A DNA stretch of 63,413 nt, the filler included, from Pelomyxa schiedti (taxonomy: Eukaryota > Protista > Evosea), in NCBI GenBank assembly GCA_020536535.1. It is 6 parts of 6 records of this genome, joined end to end, with 100 filler letters (N's around TTAATTAATTAA, not from the genome) between each part and the next. Parts side by side here need not be neighbours in the genome. Positions count along the whole stretch, not along the records: positions 19,360 to 42,518 come from JAHLWZ010001059.1; 5 more parts are not named here. One strand, given 5' to 3'. Position 1 is the first letter of the stretch, and each line of letters opens with the position of its first letter. A program made the position numbers and the translations under genes. The notes under the pieces are model-generated. The model saw only the letters and a program-made list of their open reading frames with translations. It searched no databases and was not told where the DNA came from. Shown here piece after piece: positions 25,597 to 42,012 of the stretch.

Positions 25597-25704
25597 GTGC
25601 CACAGCACCGAAATCCCTAAACAACTAAACGTCATCACACTCTTTTTCGGTTCTGTCAAACGCCAATCAAAACAGACTTCGAACCAAGAGGCGTGTCAGA
25701 CGGG

Positions 25705-28700
25705 ATGCAGGAGCTGCACTACATACAGACGACGAGGCCAGGGGGGGCGCTGAGCGGGTGCGCGGTGACGGCGGTGCCGCACAACGGGGCGCTGACGCTG
25801 GTGGTGGCGGACGGCGACTCGGTGCTGTGCGTGACGGCGTCCGAGTTCCTGGGGGACGACGCGGACGCCACCGCGGCCAGGGACGACGACGGGCGCGGGG
25901 GCTGCGGCGGCGACGACTGCCTGCTGCCGCTGCTGGACGAGCAGCCGCCGTCGTCCCCGCGCTGGTCCGCCGCCGACCCCCCGCCCGGCGAGTGCCCCGG
26001 CGCGTCCACGGCCAGCCCCGCCTACGGGCTGCGGCAGGCGCCGGCCCACCACCAGCAGCAGCCGCCGCAGGCCTCGGCGGAGTCGCCCCCGGCGGTGACG
26101 GGCGGAGGTGGAGGAGGAGGAGGTAGCACCAGCGGGGGGAGCAGCTGCGAGGGCGAGGAGCGGTGGCAGCTGCACTACGGGCACGGGCACAGGGGAGGCG
26201 GGGGGGAAGGGGGAGGAGGCGACGGCGGGGGAGGGCACTTGCACTACCACCACCAGCACCAGCACCAGTACCACAGGCACCCGCTGCAGAGCCACCTGCA
26301 CCGGCACCACGGCCGCTCCCTGTCCCAGGGCGACGTGGGGGGGTCGCAGGCCATGTGCCCCGACTGCGCCGCGGCTGGCGGCTGCGCCGCGGACTGCTCG
26401 GCCTGCGCCTCCACCTCGGGAAGCACCGTCACCACGAGCGTAGTGGTGGGCTCCGGCTCCGGCTCTGGTTCTGCTTCTGGTTCTGTGGGGGCAAACGGGA
26501 CTGGAAGTGGTGGCGGGGGTGTGAGTGGCAGCGGGAACGGGAACGGGAACGGGAACGGCGCAGAGAACGGGAGTGGATGCGGATGCGGAAGTGGAGGTGC
26601 CGCCATTGGAAATGACAGTGCTTGCGGCGGAGGGACACTTACTGGAAGCTGTGGTGGGGCCAGCTCTGCCAATACATCACCTTCGGTGGACAGGTGCAGC
26701 TCGTTGCATTGGCCGGCGGTTTCTGTTGATTTAATGAGCTCCGGAATGGGCCTGAACTTCATTTCACCTGCGCAGTCGGCACTCCCACCCTCACCGTCAG
26801 TTGCGCCACCATCACCACTGCAGTCACCGTGTTTAACGCAGTCGCCGAGTTCAAGTCAAACAGCAACCCTATCATCTTCACCTTCTCCCACCTCCACTTC
26901 TCTACCAGAAAATTGTAATTTGACAGTTGTATCTATTGCTTCCTTCCAAGTGAGTGGGAGGCCTGTTGTGGCGATTCTTGCATGTTTTGCTCAACCACTT
27001 GATGCGTCGGAGGTAACAACTGCACCCTCCAACATTAGTTCCCCTTGTATGTCAACTTTTGTATCCTTCACACTTCAATTCCCAATCCAACACATGCACC
27101 TTTTCCCCCCTTGCTATTCACTCCCCCTTCACTCACAAATCTTTTTTCCCAGATCAACCTCCTGACGTGCAAACCTCCCAGTCACAATCTCAATCTCAGT
27201 CACAGACTCAATCACAGACCCAATCACAACAGCGCCGTCGGATGTCTTGTGCACCTAAACCTGCTCCACCAAAGCTTCATGGAGTATTGTATGTGTGTGG
27301 CGCTCACACAGCTGAGTCCCGTAATCGCCCATTAGCTTCCATTATCAGCACTGACTTCCAGGCAATCCTGTTGAACTTTCCTCCATTAATTATGGAATGT
27401 ATGGAGGTATTTCTTTACTGCAGATACCCTCAACCCCTGACAATTTGATCGCAGGTCCACCGAAGTTGGACATTTGTCATAACAAGGAGTGATTGGTCCC
27501 GTCCAGCACCAAAGAAAGAAACAACCACTCAACCTCCACACCATCCATCACATACGTCGACACCACCCCCTCCTCCATCACCACCTCCACCACCTTATCC
27601 TGTGCATGTATTTGCCGAAAGCCATCATGGTAATTACACTGAAGTTGACGCAAAGATTCGCCTTCCAGAGTTTGACAATCTTCCTACAAGGTTTGAGTAT
27701 TCTGATTTTCTAATGAGCTAAGTTTCACAAGTTGCTTGAGTATTGCATCAAGAACAAGTAATTTAAATCGAATCACTGTTTGCGGGTGCACAAATGGATA
27801 TATTCGAATAGCCAGACACTGTGCTGGTACAATTACCCTCAACTTGTAATATATGACTATACAACTCAAATGGTCTTAGTTTTAAAGTTTTCTTTTTCGT
27901 GCAGAGGCCAAGTGTGAAATCATTGGGGAAATCACACTGGATGGACCAATAAGCTCCGTGTGCTTATTTCCACCTCGACCAACGCTTCCAATTGGTACGC
28001 ACTAGTTTGCTTCTCTCCTTGAACCACTTACCTTTGTTCCAGGGGCAATGCATCCTGTAGCACAACACATCCAGAAGTCTGTTGTTGGGCGTGGTCCAGG
28101 GTCATTCACAAGCAGGAGTACGAAGGAAGCACCAATTCCCACAAGAAGAATTGGTGATGTCGTTCCCCTTCCCATGTTTATGCCCGCTGATGAGCTTCTG
28201 CATCTCGCAGCAGCTTCTGCATTGGGCTATGCAATCGTTTTCAGGTTTTGCCCCTCCTCCACTATCTAGGGCTCAATTCCCGCAGTAATGTTCTGAAAGA
28301 GGGATTCTCAAAGGGGCAAATCCTTCCCGAATCCGACACGCACGATTCCTGCACCGGCGTTCTCGCCGCCGACATTGACTGGGACGGCAACAACGAATTA
28401 CTTGTCACAACCTTTGGACAAGCCATGCTAGTTTACAACCAATGTATCCCAAACTCCCCGCTTTGATGAAGGAATTCTAATTTACACACATACACAACAG
28501 GTGACATTACCGGCTCACCCAATCACGTGCAGTTTGAGCTCCACAAGACATACCGATTCGCCCGGCCTGTATATTCTCCTTGGTGCAGTGATGTCACCGG
28601 TGATGGCCTGGATGAGCTAATTGTGCCTGCAATGGGAGGATGCCACATCATGCAGGCGAACCTGAAAACAGCCAAGGAGAAGGTTCAAATTATCACATCA

Positions 28701-29577: not shown

Positions 29578-32500
29578 ATGATGCTTCGGGGCACCAACGG
29601 GTGCAGGGATGAGATCGCACCAAGTTGGGTGCGAGTGGAGGTAGACATCGTTGGGTGGTTGTCTGTGACCTCGGTGACAATGAGATTCATGAGCAACGAG
29701 GTAATTGGTAAACCGTGTACGTGGGCGGTTTTGAATTGTGGGATTGCAGGCACCACATGGCGAGTCTGTTGCAAAAGATGAATTTGAGTTGATTTTTGCC
29801 CTACCTGAAAATTCAACTGTTTGTGGTTATGCTGCTGACATTGAAGGTTTGTTGTTTTTTGTTTTGTTTTTCTTTCCCTCTGTGGCTTCAAACTACTTTT
29901 TTTTTTTTTTTCACAGTAGAATCTTTTGTTAGGAAAGATGGTTGAAGCCAATGTGATCGAAAAACAAGTTGCACGAGCTGCTCTTGAGACTAGTGTATAG
30001 AAAATTTCTCTTTGGACAATGAAGTGCTAAGTAAACAAGATAAGGGCCAATAAGGGAGCGAGCCTGGCCGAAAAAACTTCTGGCAATCTTTTCAGGGTTC
30101 GAATTTTTCCCGTTCTCCCTGGGATTGCTCGCGTTATCAAAGTTGCCTTCAGTAAAACTCTTGGCTGTGATGGCGTTTATAATTTCCCCTTGAAGTCCTG
30201 TGCTGATTCCACGTCAATTAAAGTTCGTCCCTCTCTTTTCCATCACCTGTGAACCAATTATATTTGGGTCTTGTTATTATTTAGATAAATGTCTTTTCTC
30301 TGTCCCCGAATTCTCCTCTTGTTACTCTTGGTGCTGAGCGCTACTCAATGACTCAACAAAGTGAAAGCAATGGTGTGGTTACTCAACATTAATCTTTTCT
30401 CTTATTTATTTGTCAGCAACTCAATATGAATTCAGCTTCTCCACTGATCTGCATTCTGTAAATACTACCATTTGCATCCACACTGGACTAGAATTGATTG
30501 ACCAAGCCACAATACCTGCGTTTACAGAACGTGGTGACGAGGCTATTGATGACAATGACTTTACATTTTTCTATGCCCCACTGGTTCTGAATTCAACGAA
30601 TATTCCGCAGTCAATGTCCCCCTCGGTTGTTGTGGTTCTATGGGACACTTCCCAAAGTAGATTAGAGTGCAATAAGTCCAGGTATTGTTTTGGTCATCCC
30701 ACCTATCTTAAAAAGAAAAGAGAAGTGGAAGCCTTGCTCTTCCTGCTTAAGAACTTGAATCCTTCCTTTATTGACGTTGTCTGCTTTTCCAATCAAGTTA
30801 CTTCTTATGAACGCTTTTCTGTGTGTAATCCAAGAAACAAAATATATTCTGAATGGTACTGGAGGGATCAGATAGAGTAACAACTACAATGAACTTCATC
30901 ACCAACCTTTCATATGACGGTGGCACCAATTTAAGTGCTGCTGTGAATTGGGCTGCTAAGTCTTTTTCTGCCATTAATGGAGTCATAGGGCTACTCTTTA
31001 GTGACGGTTTAACTTCCTGGGGGGAGGTATTCCCAACAAGAAAGTTTTTTGAGTATTCAACTCTTTTCCTAGGAGTATAAAACCGTAGAGATGCTGAATA
31101 TTCCCTTTTTTACTTTTACTGCCTCTGTGCGTGCCGATTTTCTAGTTTTACAAGTATCCCACCCTTTTTCCCCACTGAGTTTCACACTCCATAGAGAATC
31201 GCAAGTGGGACAGGAGGCCTTTTCTTTAACCTACAAGAGAACAAGTAGCGTTCCCTTCCCTGTTTCTTTTAACAATTAATAGAGACGTGTCTGCTGTCCT
31301 GGCAACTCGTGTTTATTACATGCGCGCAACTGACGTAACTGGTCGAATAGTTTCCGATGTGTATCCGTCAACACCACAACCAGTTGGTACACCCTTCTGG
31401 ATTTCTGGGAAAATTATTACACCAATACATGAAGGTTGGAAAATCAATTTAGACTATTTATGTCTAACATTCACCTTTCAAGACATTATCACGATTCACT
31501 TTTGTGTGCCCTCAACAAACATCTCTTTCACAAAAGCTGTGTCTGTTTCGCGAAATACCGTGACCACAGCACCCATGGGAATAGGTTATTTTCTTCACGT
31601 ATTATAAGGGTCGATATCAAACCAAGGTATAGTATCAAGATTTTGGGCACAGATGCTGGTAAACGAAAAAGCTTCCTTTGGAAACCCAAGCCACAGTAAG
31701 GAAAATATTATCTCCTTGGCAAGAAAATACAAGTTGCATTATCTCCCTTCCAATTATGCACTAAGATAGGATTCCAAAGATTTGTTACAGATGACACTTC
31801 TTTTATGCTACTCGACTCTCTTGATCAAGTATACCCCACGGTTACCATGTCAACACACTTTTTACACCCCCTTTCCTTTTTCACAAGTACTTGGAGCATG
31901 GAATTGAACCTGCCGATTCCCTTCCAGAAATCAAAAAAGAGTATGAAGTGAAAATTGCACTCAGAGAAGTAAGCATGTTTCTTTCACCTAAACCCTGAGA
32001 ATTATCCTTCCCATCAAGGCTGAAAAGGCAAGAGATTTGGTGCAGTATAGCCAGTATGTTGCCAAAATGTGGCGGAGGAGAGTTTCTTGGTGGGAAGCAC
32101 ATTACGATGGCTGTACCCGAGTGTGCTGGTATAGTATAACTTCCTGAACTAATAAAAATCATCAGAATTGCTTGGACTTGAACTTTTTGTCTTTAGAGGC
32201 AGCCCAATACCAGGTCAATGATAACAATCGGCCCTTGGAGCCAGATTTTATTCCTCCCACTCCCGAGCCTGCTCCTAAGCCAGCAGTGGAAGCACCACGA
32301 GCTGCTTCCGGCACCTTCGGTCTCTTTGGACGTAGGAAATTACATCCCCCTCCAGAACCGAGTGAATTGGTTGGCTCTTCATTCTGCCCTCTGTAGCTCA
32401 CTTTCCAATAGATAAAAAATCTGCGCGAGGCAAGTGAAGCTATAGAAAAGCGAGGATACCAACTCGAAAAGAGAATCAAGACAGAAAAAGAAAAAGCTCT

Positions 32501-35289
32501 AGCATTTCACCGAGCTAAGAATAAGCGTGGCACGCCTTTCCCAAGTTTGATGTAATGCTAAATATTGTCTGCAGCATGTATGTTCTCTCTTAAGCAGGCC
32601 AAATTACTATCTTCACAAATGGAGTCCCTGTTTACAAGACAAACTGCGATTGAACAGACTCTTTTGACACTGGAATCAGCAACCACTAACCTGGAATGCA
32701 TGAAAATTGGAGCCGCAGCCCTCGGGCAGGCCCCATCTGTGACCCTTTCAGTTGAGGATTCAATGGACAGTATCAGAGATCAACTGGATTCATGTGAAGA
32801 GATAAGTGACGCTATCTCTCAGCCAATTTCGGAAATATTTGATGAGGAAGAGCTCGAACAAGGTAGAGTTTCGACCAACATAACTAGACGTTAGACGTAC
32901 AACATAGAGCTTGAGGAACTTGTCTTCGCAGAATCGGGCCAGGAAACAATAATGAAAACCATAGCGTGCACTCCCCAGTCATCAGGAGTACAGTTAAATC
33001 GCAGCGAAGATGATGAGTTGGCTGAACTGGAAAGAATGATGATGGGAGATTATAGTCCATCATGTTTTTTTCTTCCCTTTTGGAGTGCATCTTACAAAGC
33101 AAAGTGCCAACCAACACTTCTGAAGAAATATTGCACCAGAATGGATCAGAATCCGTTACTCAGGAATTCTGTCAAGCAACCCAATACCCTGCACCTGATC
33201 CAGTACAATCTTGCGGCCATTTTAGTTTGGAAGCCCCTGTGCAACCATTTTCCTCAAGGCCAGAAGGAGATGAAAAATGTACGAAAGTGTTTGGGATCTT
33301 TACCCACCCTCACTACAGATGATTTTTCTTTACCTTCAGTGCATGATAGAGGCCGCGAAGTATCTGAGAGGTATCCTCACCCTGTTAGAAGTTGCCATCT
33401 CATCCTACACAGTGATGTGGAAAAATCTGGATGGTGTACAAAACAAGGAGGGTCCCTGAAAAGCTGGAAGAGGAGATTTTACGTGCTCAAAGGGAATAAT
33501 TTATTGTACTTCAAGTCCCCAACGGTGGTTATTCTCACCCCAACCTTACCTCTTAATTAAAAAAAAAACCAGGAAAAAGAACCAGTAGCCTGCATTAAAC
33601 TTGACCCAAGAATGGAGATTACCAAAGAAGAACGCCATACGCGTCATGTCCTCACCATAAAAAGTAGCTTCATTAACTTCTTAATCATTTAATAACCCCG
33701 GAAGTTCCCCGAAGATCCTACATAATGAATTTGGACTCTAAAGAGGAAATTGACTCCTGGGTGGATTGTTTACAGCGGAAGCTAGCCACCCTTGGTCCTG
33801 CCTTACAAATTCTGCCAATCCCACAAGGGCAAAGAATTCTACCAAGTTATCCATTATCTTCGCCAGTGCTTGTTGACATTGTTACAGTGATAAACAATTC
33901 TGAAAGATTTTTCCTTTCCCTCCCTGATGTTACCGTTCTCCAAGAATATGGACATGTCCTCAAACGTCATTCAAGTATGCCAGAGTTTTTCCCAGTATTC
34001 TGAGTTCAATAGACATCCTCAACTCTCTGAGAACAATAATTGAAAGCAATAGTGTCCTTTGCCTAAATCCCGCTTTCTTTATCCAAGTGGCACTGTGTCT
34101 TTTTGAACACGGAGGAATGTCACTTTTGTATTTACTCTCCTTAAACTATACAATTACCTCACGTTTCTGTTCCAAGATTCTTAAGTAACATGACTGAAAG
34201 TAATCCTGAAAACAGTCGGGCAATCCGATCGGCTTCTTTCCTTCTTATGCAAGCTGGACTTATCGAGTTTCTTTCATTCTTTTCCCTTGTATCGTGACTT
34301 AAGTGCACATAGTGAGGCTATTTATCTGCTCGAGAAATGCTTGAAACTCCGGCAAGAGGAGCCCCAAGTCATTTTATATTTATCTTTTGATTTCTTAATG
34401 TAATCTTTCAGTCACACCGTGATCTTGCATTAGCTCTGATGCAAACCGGAAAACCAGGTGTGCTCCAACTAAAATCTAGGCTTTGGTGGTAAACTTTTCT
34501 GAATGCAGGTGATCTGGAGAGAGCACTGTCGCTGATGCACCACGTGATTACCCAAAGATGGGACACTAGATTTGCCCAAATTCAAGTTGTTGCCCTTATG
34601 GTTAGTCTGCCTAGCTCTTTTTTTTTCCGAACCAAGGTGTCTGCAGGAGTTTAATTCCATGTTGACAAGATCTGATACCCCAAGGTACTGAGGATTGACA
34701 AGTAGGAGGTTCTGAATTTTGATTCCATAGTACCACTTCTGTGGATCCTGATCCGCGAATAATTTCACCAATTGATGTTGATATCCGCTGTGTAATGCAA
34801 TGGGATACTGATATGACAGGCATACATGAGCCTTTTTTCTTGGGAATGAAAGTCTGCAGATGTGGAGCTTATAGTAATAGAGCCTAATGGGGAAAAGTGC
34901 TTCAGTTTCAACAACCTCAGTAAATGTGGTGCATTAGTTTCCAAGAACTTTAGCCGCGGATATGGCCCAACTGAATATATTGTATGCTAAATAATTCCAC
35001 TTACATTTAAATGCCGCGAATAACCAGTTTCAAGATAAAAAAAGCTGTTCCTGGAACCTACAAGATATTTGCCCGGCTATACCACACGCCGGACCCCAGG
35101 TATTCACACAATTATGCTGTTTTTGACTCACATCAATCATCCTTTCCGGAAAGCATTATTGTTACCACCTGTGTGAGTGTTACTGTGGATTTCGGCAGAA
35201 CAACAGAACAACTCGTGGGATACTGTGTAGCACCCGTCAGTCACAAAACTCCCGAGGTTCTTGTTGGAACAATAGATTGCACGAATTAA
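29578..35289 (+). CDS. Chimeric VIT-vWA-[Snf7/ESCRT-III]-[PH]-TPR-DUF2135 protein (multi-exon)
   Basis: VIT (FELIFALPENSTVCGYAADIEGKMVEANVIEKQVAR..GNLFRVRIFP); vWA (LWDTSQS, GGTNLS, LFSDG); RFWAQ..FVTDDTSFMLLDSLDQYLEHGIEP..WRRRVSWW; Snf7 32316-32925; PH about 33412-33790; [61 protein letters not shown]. Confidence 0.8.
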
Positions 35290-35414
35290 TCCCTTATGGG
35301 CAATCAAAGTTTTTTTTTGTTTTCTTTGTTTAAAGTTTAAACATGGCAAGGTGTTTTGTTGGTTTGGTAAATGTTACAGCAGACTCTCTTTCGTTCTACC
35401 CGGAGATTTCTTGA

Positions 35415-38400
35415 TTATTCTGTTTGAAATGTAAATAAAAGCCCATTGAGAAGGAGACATACCAGTGAGAATCCTACAGGGACATCTGTGTCATCACGCA
35501 CAGTGCGGACTTTAAGGAACCCCGAGTCCCAATCGGGGAGTTCCTGCAGTGCTTCTATGACCCTTTCAGTTGAATAGAAGCCGTGATATAGGGTTCTGGT
35601 CTCTTCGGGTGTTGTTCCCTTGAGCTGATGGCCCCATGTCACGCACTCTATTCCATTCACAACAAGTACATGTCCTTGGTCCAAGACGAGGTTATAAACC
35701 ACTCCACTGGAATTAGGAATTTCGTGGACATCGTCGAGCTTGCCTACCAGCTCTCGTGGTGTAGTCCAGATTCCGTTTATTCTAACGGGATGTCCGGGTG
35801 TGATGCACAGGCCTCCTGGGAAAGATACCAGGTTTTTGTTTGGCCGGCTCAGTTCCACAAGGCACACCACTTTGGCCACCTTTCCGCCGCTTATCTCCAC
35901 TTGGTCTCCTTTCGCCAGCTCACTTATAGGAACATCTCCTGTGCCGCGTAAATGGACGAGGCACTTGCCCGCGAAGCAGCCACCACCTCCACCGCCATAG
36001 TATGCTTCCATGACTGGTGGTGTGGGCTCGCGTGGTGGAGGAGAGGGAGCTTTCGGAGGCACGTAAGCGGCAGCTTTTGCAGGGGTGGGTGCGAACGCTG
36101 GTGTTGGTGTCGGTGGAAGCTTCGGGATTGGTTGAGGAGTGGGTATGGTGTTAGGGGTAACTGGAGTCTTGCCTGATGACTTGACTGTGGCTGTGGGAGG
36201 AGGTAGTGAGATGAAAATCTTGCCGCCTGATTCAGATTTCTGCCTGAATAGTGTGCCACCATACAGCTGGAGCCCAGGATCAAGCATGTTGGTGCATATT
36301 TCAAGTTGATGAGCACGAACTAGTGCGCGTAGGTAATGTTTTCCCCATCGGTTGTAACGAGCATTATCATTGACGGCTTTGGTCATTCTTCCACTTACAT
36401 CAACATAGATTGCTTCAGCAAGAGGACTATTTGCAGCAGGGGCAGACTGAGCAACGGACCTCTCCAGAGAGGACATATCTTGCTTGTATGAACCGGTGTT
36501 AATAAATTTACGAACGGAATCAATAACTGTGCATCGGATGTCTGCAAACATGGAGTCTGGTGTGGGTTGATAGGACGTCCCCGTGGCTGCAACACGCACC
36601 TCCTTTCCTTGTGAATTAGTCCAAACAAGAACTGCCTCTAGGTACTCTCCCTCTCCGCTGGTTGGGAGATAAAGAGGAGCTACAACGTGCTTCACTTGTC
36701 CAAGATGTAGAGCTCCCAGATTCGCAACCCTTCCCCATGTTGCATCCTTCACTAATACTCCCCCTTTTACAGGCCCTGCAAACTTGGAACCTCCTTTTAG
36801 CATTAAGTGAAGCATAGCTTGTTGTGTCAGCGTGGTAATAGAATTTGCAACGCAATTGACAATGCAGGTCCCGATCAACTTTGCGTCTGGGATGAATGCA
36901 AAGCTACCGTTTCCTTCCTCAGCAAGTGCCGTAAGTAACTGGCTGTCTAAGTTGTAGCCAACCCCGAAAATATTGATCTGAAACTTGAAATCGGGGTGTG
37001 ACTCCATATACCGCTTCAACTCTGGAATATGGCCCCGAGGAGGGTTGACATTTGGTTGGCCATCAGTGAGAAGAAGCAGGAACTGTTTGCGCGGGACAGT
37101 GCTTCCTTTAATTTCAGGGCCTGTACGGAGAGAGTCCATGCCCTTTTGTAGGCCTGCCCAGAGGTTTGTAGAGTCTAGGGGTATAAGTTTTGATACAGCA
37201 GCGAAAGCTGCTTCTCTTCCCGTAGAGTCAAGTTGAGTGAGGGGAAGAACTGTCCTGGCTGTGTCATCAAAAGTCACAACAGAAAGTCGATCCTCATCTC
37301 CAAGGAGGTGCACAATAGTGGACACACTATGCTTCACAATATCAAGAACTGTAAGGCCGTCGTCACGAATCACAGTGCCGTTATCATCACGATAAGTCAC
37401 CTCGGTACCCATGGACCCACTTACATCTACACAGCAGCAAATATCAACAGGAACCCGTTGGCAAACATCAGGCACTCGGATAGTTATAGCAACAGGTGTT
37501 TCACGCACAAAATGTTGAGGAAGGTTTCCACTTGGTGCAATCTCGATTGCTACTAAGTCTTCAGACTTTACTTCATCTTCCAAGGGAACACCAGTAACTT
37601 CATCACCCCAACCATCGTCCTCCGCAGTGGCAGTTGTTTTACGGCTCATATCAACATCAGCCATATCTAGTCCCTAGCAAAGTTTCAGTGTCATTTTTCA
37701 ATGAAATCTAAGAATACTGACCTTTGGTGCCTCTGCCTCCTCAGTATCTACAACTCCACAGCTGTAAACTTGAATGAGCCCGGAAATGTGAGACCGGCAA
37801 ATAGGACACTGCGGATTCGCGGAATTCTGCACGGCCGTCAAGCACGGCTTGCACCCACACTGGTGCCCACATGGAACCACCAAGAAATCAGCATTAGCAG
37901 TCAAGCACACCGCACACTTCCCCTGCTTCGGGGTTGACTTGGCAGGAGTAGTGGTGGTGGTAGCAGTAGTACTAGCAGCAGCAGGAGTAGCAGGAGCAGT
38001 AGCGGTAGTAGTAACAACAATAGGCTCGTTAAGAAGAGCCAGCAAATCGCGGAACACAGTGTCCATGTTGCGCTGGGCGTTGAGGGCCTGGACGCGGCCG
38101 CCAAAGCACGGGACGATGAGGCCCAGCTGGGCGTGGAACGCGCGGATGCGCTGGCGCGCGGCGGCCTCGTCGAGGTCGCAGGCGCGGCGGACCAGGCGGT
38201 CGCGGGGCACCGCGGCGGGCGGCGGCGCGTAGCGGTCGTGGTAGATGGCTCCGGTGCGCGAGTCGGTCCAGCGGCCCAGCATGTTGGCGACGCACTGCGC
38301 GTCGGCCATCTGGAACACGACGGCGCGCTCCACCGCGACGTGGCGCAGGAGCTCCTGGGCCTGGCTGACCGTGCGGGGGAAGCCGTCCAGCAGCGCGCCC

Positions 38401-38740
38401 TTGGAGGCGCAGTCGGGCTCCGCCAGGCGGTCCTTGATCAGCTGGACCACGAGGTCGTCGGGGACAAAGTCGCCGGCGTTGACGAACGGCGCAACCTTGG
38501 CGCCGAGGGGGGTGTTGCGAGCGACGGCGTCGCGGAAAATGTCACCGGTGGAAACGTGGACGAGGCTACGGTAAGAACAAAGTAGTGAGTTTTTTCGTCG
38601 GGTGGGCGGCCATATGTTTTTTGTTTGTAATAAAAACGTTTGTGGTACCCTAGTTTCAGACTGAGTTTGTGGCATTGGGTGCCTTTGCCGGAACCTGGGG
38701 GACCAAGAATCACAATAACTCGTGCTGGTGTCGTTGCCAT
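35415..38740 (-). CDS. Adenylate kinase-RING-vWA-Vwaint-Hint(Vint) fusion protein (3 exons)
   Basis: GPPGSGKGTQ, STGDIFR, LDGFPRT; C3HC4 RING CAVC..PCGH..CKPC..CPIC; VDVSGSM, LLTDGQP; RWGKHYLRAL..DPGLQLYG; Hint GG-CFAG..ITPGHPV..VYNLVL..NGIECVTWGH; in-frame GT-AG introns 38648-38566 and 37721-37674. Confidence 0.85.
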
Positions 38741-39028
38741 TCAACTTTTCTGCTTTTTTTTTGTTGGTTTTTTCCTTTGTTGATTTCAGCGGCGGAAACC
38801 AACGTTCTTGGCTTTTTCTCAGACCGGTGTAGGATTGAACCGTGCCCAATTAGCAAAAAGATCGCTCCTAGGCACACCGTGAGTATTGCTCCTTCTGAGT
38901 ATTCTCAATACCCAATGTGTCTACGAACTCCAGAGCGCTTTCTTCACCCTTTTCTTTTCTCAATAGTTTTTCCAGTTGGTGCCTACTTGTGGGACCCGGG
39001 TGGTGTGGAGGTGTTCACAGACGAGGGG

Positions 39029-39870
39029 ATGTCATCACCAGATTCGTTGCTCGTGGGGCTCGCGTCCAGTAACACCCTCAGGGTGTTGGACCTCCTCCGG
39101 AGCCCACAGCCGCCTCCCATAACCAGAGTCCACATCCTCGCCTGCTGCACCAAGCACGGCTCCAAAGACCTCCTCTCCATTCTCCTCCAGCACCTCGACC
39201 GACCCACGAGTCCCCCCGGCCCTGGACTCCCTTCTCAACTCCCCCGGCAGCCCCAGCGGGGACCCCACCCCGCTCTTAGCGGCCTGCCTGAGCCGCCGCA
39301 GCGACCTCGCCCGCCTGCTGCTGGACTACGGCGCGGACCCGGCGGCCCCCAGGCACTCCCGCTGCACGGTGCCGGCGACCCTGAAGGAGTGCGTGCCGCT
39401 GTGGCTGGTCTGCAGCTCCCCGGAGCTCGGGGACGGCCCGCTGCGGGATCCCATAATGGACGCGATGGCGAGGAGGTTCACGTCCGAGCCGTGGCAGTAC
39501 TACGGGTGGCCTTATTACCAGCAGCCCGGTGTCAGGGGTGCGCCTTTGGAACTCACCCCCGCTGTATCGTTCTTGTGTGGCTGGCACCCCCGCGCTGGTG
39601 TGTGCGTTCTTCTATTATGGGACATTTTTGTGCCTCCAGGGTTTTTACACTGAGTTGTTGGACTTTTTAGGCAGCAAGTCTGTACTGTCACTGTGTGGAA
39701 TACCTTATTTTATTGCTCAAGAGGTGCTGACATGCAAATTCACTTGTAGTTATTGTGGCACAGTGGTGATGATAGCACACTGTGCTGTTCCATGGCACCT
39801 GGTATGCGAAATGCCTTTAAACTGGATAATGCTGAACAAAACAAACAAAAAAAAAGAACCCAGCAAATAG
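39029..39870 (+). CDS. Ankyrin-repeat protein with a C-terminal HPRAG motif; 1-nt frameshift at a C6 run
   Basis: TPLLAACLSRRSDLARLLLDYGADP; SFLCGWHPRAG, intron 39598-39670, SKSVL; frame changes at CCCCCC 39212-17; 3' end uncertain. Confidence 0.6.
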
Positions 39871-41526
39871 TGAGCTTTATTGGAAATTTAAAAGGTATTA
39901 CTGTTGTAAAACATATGAATCCAAGGGATGCAGGCTCTGTTACCATTCATGAGTTGTAGCACAGCCTGCATCCCTGGATAAAATAGAGCCACGATGATGT
40001 GAATCCACTGTGTCATTTGCGGGATGTGGGATGTCAGAGAGTAAAACCTTCCTATTTTATTTACTAGTAGAATTTCTGTTTGGAGCTTGGCTGAACAATG
40101 GAGTGGCTTGGTGGTTTGTTGTCTTTTCACATTTCAAGAACCAGTGTTCTTCAGTTGAAGAATACAAGTGCACAAGTAAGACTTGAGGGACTCAAGATGG
40201 TCCCTTTGTGCAAGATTTGGAAGCACAAGAGGACTGTTGTTCAACTGGGGAAATACTGGAAGGTTGGTTCCTGGTTTGTTTGATTGTTCCCATGCTTCCT
40301 GACAGACTTGAAGTAAAGCACTTTTTTGCTCCTCTGTCTGTGGTGGAGCCTGGTTCAAGAATATCCCAATCAACAATGACATGCACTTGAAGCTTAATAA
40401 AGAGTGAGAAAAGCTTTTCAATTTGCAAGTGAAACAAACAAAATTGGTGCATAAACTGAATCCTGGAAGTATAAAGAAATTTTTGCACAGTCCTGAAAGT
40501 ACTCTGCTAGGTGCAGCAGCCTCTTGTTCCCTTCCTGAATTGGAAGTTATTCAACAAGAAGACATGCAAATGGTGCACACCGTGTCAAATGGGGTAAGGG
40601 TAAAGAGGAACATCAGAGAAGCACATAAATAAGAAAGAAGACAGCTTTTCTCGTGCTTCTACCAGTTTATGTGAGATAAAAGTACTTCCAAAGTATTCAT
40701 TCCTACCTTTCTTGCAACATCTCCCTTATGCTTGAAATGCAAAGCACATTGTGTCCTGTTGTTTTAAGGGAAAAAAAGTTGGTAAACTTTCAGAATGAGG
40801 CAATACACACATGGACGATGGATCAGAACTTGAGGCAGTAAACGTGGTGAGTGAGGCCTCAGGAGGTTCTTCACCCGAAAAGGAGGAAGAGGAAGTAAAA
40901 GATACAGAGGAGGAAGGCGAAGGAGAAGGAGGTGATGGCAGAGGTGGCATTCCAGCACCACTCAGAGGAACTGGTTCCGAGTTTGAACTCATTATTGCAC
41001 CAAGTACATGTTCGAGAGAATCCGGCAAAGGGAGCCCCACGCTCTGCGCACTCGGCTCATCGTCCTTGTTGTTCTGAGTACTCAATTCCGCCACGCTTTG
41101 GGGTCCGTTCCCAGGCTGATTCACAAGTACGGTGGTATGCCCAGGAACCCCGGCGTCGCCATTGGGCACCGTTTCGTTTCCCGGGGGGTTTTTGTCGGTG
41201 CATTCGGTCGCGTCGCGGCCGGGGCCGTAACCAGAAGCCGACGTCGTCGCGTCGCGTGCGGCTCGGTCCGCCGTAGTAGCAGCGGCGCATGTGCCATAAT
41301 GCTGTTGTGTCTGCTGCTGTGGGGGTTGTGGTTGTGGGCGGTCTGCACCGTGAATACGACGGTGCGGGAGGTGGCGGTGCTGGGAGCCGCTGTCCCTGCT
41401 ATACGTTCGGGTGGAACAAGAGACTTGTGGGATGTAGGCACCTGGGTCGGACGACCCCGACGCCGGGAAGACACCGTGCCACGGGTCGCCATCGACAACC
41501 GACTTGAGCCTCGTTCCCGGTTGCAT
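39740..41526 (-). CDS. Hypothetical multi-exon protein with a low-complexity N-terminal exon
   Basis: 266-aa ORF from ATG 41526, then plausible GT-AG-bounded exons (EGNKRLLHLAEYFQD; APPQTEEQKSALLQVCQEAWEQ). Confidence 0.4.
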
Positions 41527-42012
41527 TAGGGTTGAAAAACGAAAAAGGAATTGGAAAAGATGTTCCTCCGAATTGCTCCCACTTAGGATTGATTCCTTAG
41601 CAGGTTAAGAGCTGAACATAAAAAGGAAGCTCCCTCCAAAGAGACACATTGCGTTCTTCCCGCGAAAGTTGGATTTGCCCTCCCCACCATCGCCACCATG
41701 TGGAATCCCATCCCATCTCATCATGATCACGAGTGAGATTTGGCCAGTGTAGTAGTGTGGCATGGAAGGGCTAATGAACAACTCTCAGGAGGAAGATATT
41801 CGCAGGTGACTCGTCTCGACAGATTCCTCCCGACCCACAAGCAGAAGGGTTCGCTTTTGCTGTTGGCTCTTATCCCAATCCTCTTTCTCCAACAACACAA
41901 CAACAGAGGTGCAGTGTGGTGCCAAGTCTCAGTGATTTGAGATATTATCAGACAGATGATATATCAAATTCACATTCTTGAGCAATCAAACCCAGCCCTG
42001 CCTCGTGCTGTT

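Follow-up and report, generated by a model that had tools for sequence, protein, structure and literature searches.

Vint is the third eukaryotic lineage of HINT domains, beside Hedgehog/Hog and the inteins, and we know of no biological role for the proteins that carry it. The closest described systems are the VWA-Vwaint-Vint proteins, in which vWA, Vwaint and Vint follow one another in this order and the Vint domain holds motif A, with its Cys, and motif B (TxxH) (PMC2362128; 8r2c). In the survey of Bürglin in 2008, four of these proteins have a U-box upstream of vWA, as the original prediction for the locus treated here had noted, Metazoa are stated to lack Vint genes, and an intracellular processing of Vint proteins is argued for (PMC2362128). 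Related architectures occur in plants, where rice SOR1 (PMC5924906) and the Arabidopsis WAV3 family (PMC11047095) are reported RING-vWA-Vwaint E3 ubiquitin ligases and wheat Lr9 is a kinase-vWA/Vwaint resistance protein (PMC10260399). Here we describe a gene of Pelomyxa schiedti (assembly GCA_020536535.1) which adds an adenylate kinase (AK) and a RING finger to the vWA-Vwaint-Vint body. It lies on the minus strand at 38740-35396 of the window, the whole stretch of 63,413 nucleotides that was analysed, within the 23,159-bp record JAHLWZ010001059.1 (window 19360-42518).

The explanation that we consider the probable one is that of a single four-exon gene for a soluble, cytosolic 1056-aa Vint-family protein with an extra AK-RING head, made of an AK8-like AK, a RING, a vWA with a metal ion-dependent adhesion site (MIDAS), Vwaint and Vint, and acting through a mechanism that would unite an E3 ligase, a binding platform and HINT chemistry. 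The annotated protein P0001 (1056 aa) is 100% identical to the exons of the gene and, mapped back onto the window, defines four exons and three GT-AG introns of 83, 48 and 43 nt, with an in-frame TGA (38743-38741) directly before the start ATG at 38740. The 48-nt intron at 37721-37674 that the original prediction had placed between ..EAPK and GLDMADV.. recurs exactly in this model, and the single gene for AK, RING, vWA, Vwaint and Hint (Vint) that it had proposed agrees with P0001, paralogues and homologues alike; the nucleophilic Cys codon (35978-35976) and the TPGH motif (35801-35790) were located and show little or no variation among 55-93 relatives, and the AK P-loop and LDGFPRT stand where it had put them. 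It had not described the 83-nt intron and had missed the 43-nt one, ending the protein at 35415 with a 749-aa open reading frame (ORF), when the actual stop lies at 35398-35396 past that intron and the C-terminus of P0001 reads ..GFSLNNQEISG. The features of the gene are the following.

38649-38740, minus strand: exon 1, with the ATG at 38740; AK N-terminus, residues 1-31 of P0001
38704-38678, minus strand: P-loop GPPGSGKGT, in exon 1
38566-38648, minus strand: intron 1, 83 nt, GT-AG, phase 2, inside the AK after ..KLSLKLG
37722-38565, minus strand: exon 2; remainder of the AK (to about 38019), Thr/Ala/Pro linker and C3HC4_3 RING
38040-38579, minus strand: GC-rich island over AK codons ~51-200, LID included
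37916-37764, minus strand: C3HC4_3 RING, C248 to C287 plus tail, in exon 2
37674-37721, minus strand: intron 2, 48 nt, GT-AG, phase 0, at the RING/vWA boundary
35463-37673, minus strand: exon 3; acidic linker, vWA, beta-sandwich, Vwaint helical bundle, Pro-rich linker and Vint
36891-37445, minus strand: vWA (Pfam), with the MIDAS DxSxS (D395-S399) at 37427-37413, plus T515-D516
36579-36833, minus strand: beta-sandwich between vWA and Vwaint (model residues 224-308)
36207-36560, minus strand: helical bundle, holding the Pfam Vwaint match (36422-36240) and an invariant R..RWG.HY motif
36015-36206, minus strand: low-complexity linker rich in Pro, Thr and Ala, of poor conservation (paralogues 22-28% identical)
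35511-35981, minus strand: Vint (HINT-fold) domain, Pfam 5.5e-27 and predicted fold
35978-35976, minus strand: Cys codon of the putative cleavage site G877/C878, Vint motif A
35801-35790, minus strand: motif B, T937-P-G-H940, in the Vint domain
35645-35628, minus strand: conserved C989-V-T-W-G-H994 motif, in the Vint domain
to the end of exon 3, minus strand: C-terminal helical/beta sub-domain of the Vint region
35420-35462, minus strand: intron 3, 43 nt, GT-AG
35396-35419, minus strand: exon 4; NNQEISG and the stop TAG at 35398-35396

Pfam and fold searches were run on one exon or segment at a time, and full-length comparisons used the database protein P0001. Exon 1 gave the P-loop, with ADK at 1.2e-4 and under the curated cut-off, exon 2 gave ADK (3.4e-23) and zf-C3HC4_3 (1.4e-12), and exon 3 gave VWA (2.5e-13, residues 77-261 of its product), Vwaint (5.7e-16, residues 418-478) and Vint (5.5e-27, residues 565-721), each above its cut-off. 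No stretch of P0001 reaches a transmembrane-like hydrophobicity score and the P-loop begins at residue 13, too near the N-terminus to leave space for a signal peptide.

That these domains belong to one product is best seen in the relatives of the gene. Two paralogues of P. schiedti, P0002 and P0003, share 62% and 44% identity with the exon 3 product. P0002 (L001:3001-6343) likewise has four exons, with a 51-nt GT-AG intron at the homologous codon between RING and vWA and a 49-nt intron at the position of intron 3, while P0003 has no intron 2 at all, its exon at L002:3312-4824 encoding residues 67-571 (AK, RING and vWA) in one open frame. The position of intron 1 is common to P0002 (72 nt), P0003 (71 nt) and a stand-alone AK-RING gene, P0154 (103 nt). 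The nine introns of the three paralogues measure 41-83 nt, and the 48-nt length is thus normal for these genes. Furthermore, at least 55 of the best 120 homologues of exon 3 have the full AK-RING-vWA-Vwaint-Vint architecture, and 18 more among the same 120 carry AK plus vWA (8 as AK-vWA-...-Vint and 10 as AK-vWA-Vwaint). Of 6 transcriptome ORFs traced to their source (Gymnodinium smaydae, Yihiella yeosuensis, two dinoflagellates, Pyxidicula operculata, which is a testate amoeba, and Tripos fusus), 5 carry AK, vWA and Vint on a single transcript, the ORF of Tripos fusus being AK-vWA-Vwaint only. Genome annotations add homologues from Polarella glacialis, Symbiodinium natans, Chromera velia and the bdelloid rotifer Rotaria magnacalcarata, whose entry P0110 has all five domains, on contigs of up to 237 kb, and, horizontal acquisition or contamination aside, contrasts with the absence of Vint from Metazoa in the 2008 survey. 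Because P0003 joins AK, RING and vWA in a single exon, P0002 has its own intron at the junction, and contiguous homologues include transcripts, the fusion is genuine and not an artefact of gene prediction; it is real and widespread.

The conservation of key residues was counted in an alignment (MAFFT) of 55 full-length relatives. In Vint, G876, G877, C878, F879, H940, P941 and H994 are found in 55/55, T937 in 52/55 and C989 in 53/55, and C878, F879, H940, P941 and H994 are invariant in 93 Vint-bearing homologues too. The RING ligands (C248, C251, C263, H265, C269, C272, C284 and C287), with C3HC4 spacing, are kept in 54-55 of the 55 sequences, and the MIDAS residues D395, S397, S399, T515 and D516 in all of them. 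As for the AK, K19 and R42 occur in 52/52 covering sequences, R95, R129 and R170 in 55/55, and R158 and D161 in 54/55; all seven are intact in P0001, and we take K13, R36, R88, R123, R167, R156 and D158/159 to be their E. coli Adk equivalents. With an overall identity of about 35-45%, key residues kept to this degree speak for selection on all four activities.

The RING and the central block have informative structural relatives. The closest solved RINGs are those of cIAP2, CBL, MGRN1, MEX3C, MUL1 and XIAP, all active E3s. The vWA-to-Vwaint model (pLDDT 95.2) consists of vWA, a beta-sandwich and a helical bundle, and its best Foldseek matches are 4fx5, ArnAB (8s05), ITIH1 and Sec23/24, which share these three parts (the trunk-sandwich-helical core in Sec23/24) and superpose over about 400-450 columns (TMq 0.5-0.6, E 4e-19 to 2e-12) at 9-16% identity. 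In the model, Vwaint forms the helical arm within a three-part platform like that of Sec23/24; unlike Sec23/24, the protein has no zinc-finger or gelsolin domain, and what is shown is a likeness of fold, not a functional homology. SOR1, WAV3 and Lr9 also place a RING or a phosphotransferase N-terminal to a vWA/Vwaint block to which a role in protein-protein interaction is ascribed, but they have neither Vint nor adenylate kinase, and the kinases of Lr9 are protein kinases; the comparison with these plant proteins is one of architecture.

We propose that the block of vWA, beta-sandwich and Vwaint would act as a platform of Sec23/24-ArnB type whose MIDAS binds a protein or ligand, and that the RING would recruit E2-linked ubiquitin and ubiquitinate the substrate held there, as in SOR1 and WAV3. 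In Vint, an N-to-S acyl shift would take place at Gly877-Cys878 with the help of Thr937 and His940, and the resulting thioester might be resolved by water or by a nucleophile that the C-terminal sub-domain of Vint holds. Cleavage would separate an AK-RING-vWA fragment of about 95 kDa, shed or transferred, from a Vint fragment of about 20 kDa. The opening and closing of the AK upon nucleotide binding, or a local nucleotide turnover, may be coupled to the ligase or to the platform, and the kinase of this paralogue may be weakened by N125 and W130. Autocleavage of Vint, a ligation of the N-terminal fragment and nucleotide sensing by the kinase, all put forward in the original prediction, are inferences.

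Several points weigh against this proposal. No locus-specific cDNA was found in the accessible data, P0001 stemming from genome annotation alone. In favour of the gene model, the genome, sequenced from single cells of this anaerobic archamoeba, was annotated by means of Augustus, PASA and EVM with transcriptome data and is rich in introns, with 7.4 in an average gene and GT-AG borders in 98.4% (PMC8887013). The Vint domain has neither the C-terminal Asn and +1 nucleophile of inteins nor, following Bürglin (PMC2362128), the Hog motifs J-L, so that the sequence can argue for the first HINT step only. Variants having AK without RING or Vint, RING and Vint without AK, or AK-RING alone also exist, which makes the modules separable and their coupling hypothetical. 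Lastly, N125 and W130 could impair the AK of this copy.

This last point is the basis of a first alternative, which we regard as somewhat unlikely, namely that the AK of this paralogue serves as a sensor that binds nucleotides without catalysis, or is undergoing decay through GC-biased substitution. The best solved relative of the domain is AK8 (9fqr, 5.4e-35), and the highest-ranking matches in the library search are mostly multi-AK proteins. The LID, which the original prediction had called diverged, turns out to follow the short pattern of the whole family, GR.xDPxTGxIYHxxFxPP...RL, common to AK8, with two residues that are unusual. At the first, N125, which is shared by P0002 whereas P0003 has R125, 53/55 relatives have an Arg, which presumably corresponds to R119 of E. 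coli Adk, the Arg that stacks on the adenine of ATP, so that Asn would stand here in place of the stacking residue; the second, W130, is unique to this copy, where 49/55 relatives have an Arg. Compared with AK8 and the multi-AK ciliary kinases, which share the short LID pattern, a single AK is here mounted on an E3/vWA/Vint body, and N125 and W130 are specific to Pelomyxa. The loss of these near-invariant Arg residues and the unusual composition of the domain speak for a sensor or a decaying enzyme, as does P0154, which no longer has the counterparts of R42 and R95 and thus shows that AK decay occurs in the lineage. Against it, K19, R42, R95, R129, R158, D161 and R170 are all kept, and a catalytic set that is conserved almost throughout speaks for a functioning phosphotransferase and not for a degenerate sensor. 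Judging from these residues, the most likely function of the domain is that of an active AMP/ATP phosphotransferase.

The composition of the AK codons deserves a separate description. The island at 38040-38579 has a GC content of 0.71, and the GC content at third codon positions (GC3), calculated by codon position over the joined exons, reaches 0.96-0.98 in AK codons ~51-200, compared with 0.3-0.5 elsewhere in the gene and 0.28-0.66 for the same codons in the paralogues, which do not have the island. In codons 51-200, Gly, Ala, Arg and Pro make up 39% of residues versus 28% in the paralogues, and this compositional oddity accounts for much of the divergence of the AK in this copy; identity to P0002 inside the island (62-66%) is nonetheless no lower than elsewhere, which also counts against decay. 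Other islands are found at 25680-26719, 39020-39599 and 41100-41539 (GC 0.64-0.73, compared with 0.48 for the piece), so that 4 of the 6 fully contained annotated genes have one at the 5' end, those of the three neighbours being 440-1040 bp long. The island looks like a feature of the locus, perhaps of the genome, that could have arisen through GC-biased gene conversion or through a mutational bias near promoters. An assembly chimera was considered and rejected, because the closest paralogue inside the patch is still P0002, with N125 and RAFHAQLGLIVPCF in common, and it is further disfavoured by the similar 5' islands of the three neighbouring genes.

P0154, mentioned above, is a 314-aa AK-RING protein encoded on contig JAHLWZ010000267.1 of P. 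schiedti (L004:4001-5108). Its two introns sit at the positions of introns 1 and 2 of the fusion gene, and its ORF stops three codons past the second. The residues of its AMP site are replaced (STGDxxR by STSRLAY and DGFPRT by DGFPVT), and tblastn of its surroundings revealed no adjoining vWA or Vint remnant.

The second alternative concerns Vint, which would not cleave in vivo but serve as a HINT-fold binding or regulatory module within a protein that acts at full length. The fold itself is well supported. The Vint segment (35463-36032, minus strand) gave an AlphaFold2 model with a pLDDT of 92.3, the best match of which is 8r2c, the crystal structure of a Tetrahymena thermophila Vint (Foldseek E 5.6e-17, TM 0.76/0.85, 28% identity; phmmer 2.1e-18), followed by BIL2 (second-best; 6y75), inteins and Hedgehog-C (Foldseek E 3e-6 to 2e-4), the fold matches to inteins and BIL being weaker (TMq 0.43-0.50). 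The predicted fold is thus HINT, in agreement with the Hint identity first assigned from the DNA. Like the other VWA-Vwaint-Vint proteins, P0001 combines this fold with an extra C-terminal sub-domain and has no secretion signal. With Hedgehog Hog, inteins and BIL domains it shares the HINT fold, a nucleophilic Cys after Gly-Gly and the block B TxxH; it differs in scoring below threshold for Pfam Hint (PF01079, 16.6 bits compared with a cut-off of 29.7, motif A alone being covered), which places it outside Hog, and in a last HINT strand, NGIECVTWGH, that has no HN-C/S/T, so that, with no C-terminal Asn and +1 residue, it falls outside the splicing inteins and BIL domains. It differs from Hedgehog also by the absence of a secreted signalling domain and of a signal peptide. 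The last HINT strand carries the second motif, C989-V-T991-W-G-H994 (T in 52/55), which aligns with ECICLGH of the Tetrahymena structure and is, in our opinion, reminiscent of the conserved C-terminal Cys of the Hedgehog HINT.

A Vint domain that does not cleave would fit the presence of the Hint-like motifs A and B only (PMC2362128), the missing C-terminal Asn, and the absence of any published demonstration of Vint autoprocessing in the accessible literature. The (near-)invariance of G-G-C-F, T-x-x-H-P and C-x-T-x-x-H in 55-93 sequences is hard to explain without Cys chemistry, however, and GG/CF is the cleavage-site pattern of Hedgehog. We consider a non-cleaving Vint unlikely.

A further possibility, which we view as quite improbable, is that Vint does more than cut and works, a single time, as a conjugation device. 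The vWA/Vwaint platform or the C-terminal sub-domain of Vint would hold a partner whose own nucleophile attacks the G-G/C-F thioester, and the entire AK-RING-vWA fragment would be joined covalently through its Gly-Gly end to the target without E1 or E2, the nucleotide state of the AK gating the reaction. A precedent for such a ligation outcome is Tetrahymena BIL2, which achieves a HINT-driven, ATP-independent isopeptide conjugation (PMC8616854).

Finally, it is very improbable that the locus yields two products, either as its main state or as an intron-retention isoform, with AK-RING ending at the in-frame TGA of intron 2 (37700-37698) and a vWA-Vwaint-Vint ORF starting from the ATG at 37664: the length of this intron is a multiple of 3, the ATG lies 9 nt past the acceptor, P0154 ends three codons past the same intron position and makes AK-RING alone viable, and no locus-specific cDNA was found, but P0003 reads through without an intron, P0002 has its GT-AG intron at the same codon, the annotated model splices intron 2, whose size is typical, and dozens of homologues, transcriptome ORFs among them, are contiguous.

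GenBank labels P0001 "Voltage-dependent calcium channel subunit alpha-2/delta-2". A calcium-channel identity was rejected, since Pfam found no Cache or VGCC_alpha2 domain in the exon products, there is no signal peptide, and Foldseek matched alpha2delta through the vWA only (rank 39, TMt 0.16); the name, given to P0002 as well, is an annotation-transfer error through the vWA, and the misnaming of both loci matters for the annotation of the genome. The original prediction had left to a database check whether the AK addition was already described: it is present in many entries, some of them named 'Adenylate kinase' in UniRef, whereas in the literature searched we found no paper pairing Vint or Vwaint with adenylate kinase. 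The architecture is plainly visible in public protein databases, where the gene is already annotated as one protein, and undescribed in the searched literature. In comparison with the family of 2008 (PMC2362128), the AK and the C3HC4_3 RING at the N-terminus are what sets it apart, no kinase being mentioned there. The subfamily that joins Vint with a ubiquitin-ligase finger and an adenylate kinase, apparently an active one, is large and conserved; it is represented in Amoebozoa, dinoflagellates and chromerids, in a rotifer and in numerous environmental sequences. Its study could reveal links between energy charge, ubiquitination and HINT chemistry in protists, and could inform that of the plant vWA/Vwaint modules of auxin signalling and rust resistance.

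In a FastTree phylogeny of the vWA-Vwaint core, AK-RING-Vint proteins are scattered throughout the top 120 matches, and many of the entries without AK begin right at the vWA and thus resemble truncated contigs; for both reasons, we draw no inference on a single or several origins of the fusion. A homologous fusion gene on the ENA contig k139_414933 (L005) was called as four separate 'proteins' (AK-RING, VWA, Vwaint and Vint), and the short AK-RING matches in the search of 1.84 billion proteins are accordingly, at least in part, artefacts of such splitting. A subfamily of about 710-760 aa (P0061, P0071, P0079, P0084, P0092 and others) has AK directly on vWA-Vwaint, with neither RING nor Vint, and includes the Tripos fusus ORF, a 'complete' transcript ORF. 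P0118 has a U-box instead of the RING, and P0055 an extra myosin TH1 domain.

The acceptor of intron 2 is followed, 6 nt further on, by another in-frame AG, at 37669-37668 (ttgctAG/ggactAG/at, window 37668-37675); the choice of this distal AG would remove Gly-Leu, and as P0002 retains 'GL', the proximal acceptor is favoured. Beside the fusion gene, on the plus strand, lie genes annotated for a 1041-aa Snf7+PH protein (30889-35289) and a 274-aa VIT-domain protein (29680-30880) and, up to 25596, a UBR1/PRT6-like N-recognin which extends beyond the low-coordinate end of the stretch L003.

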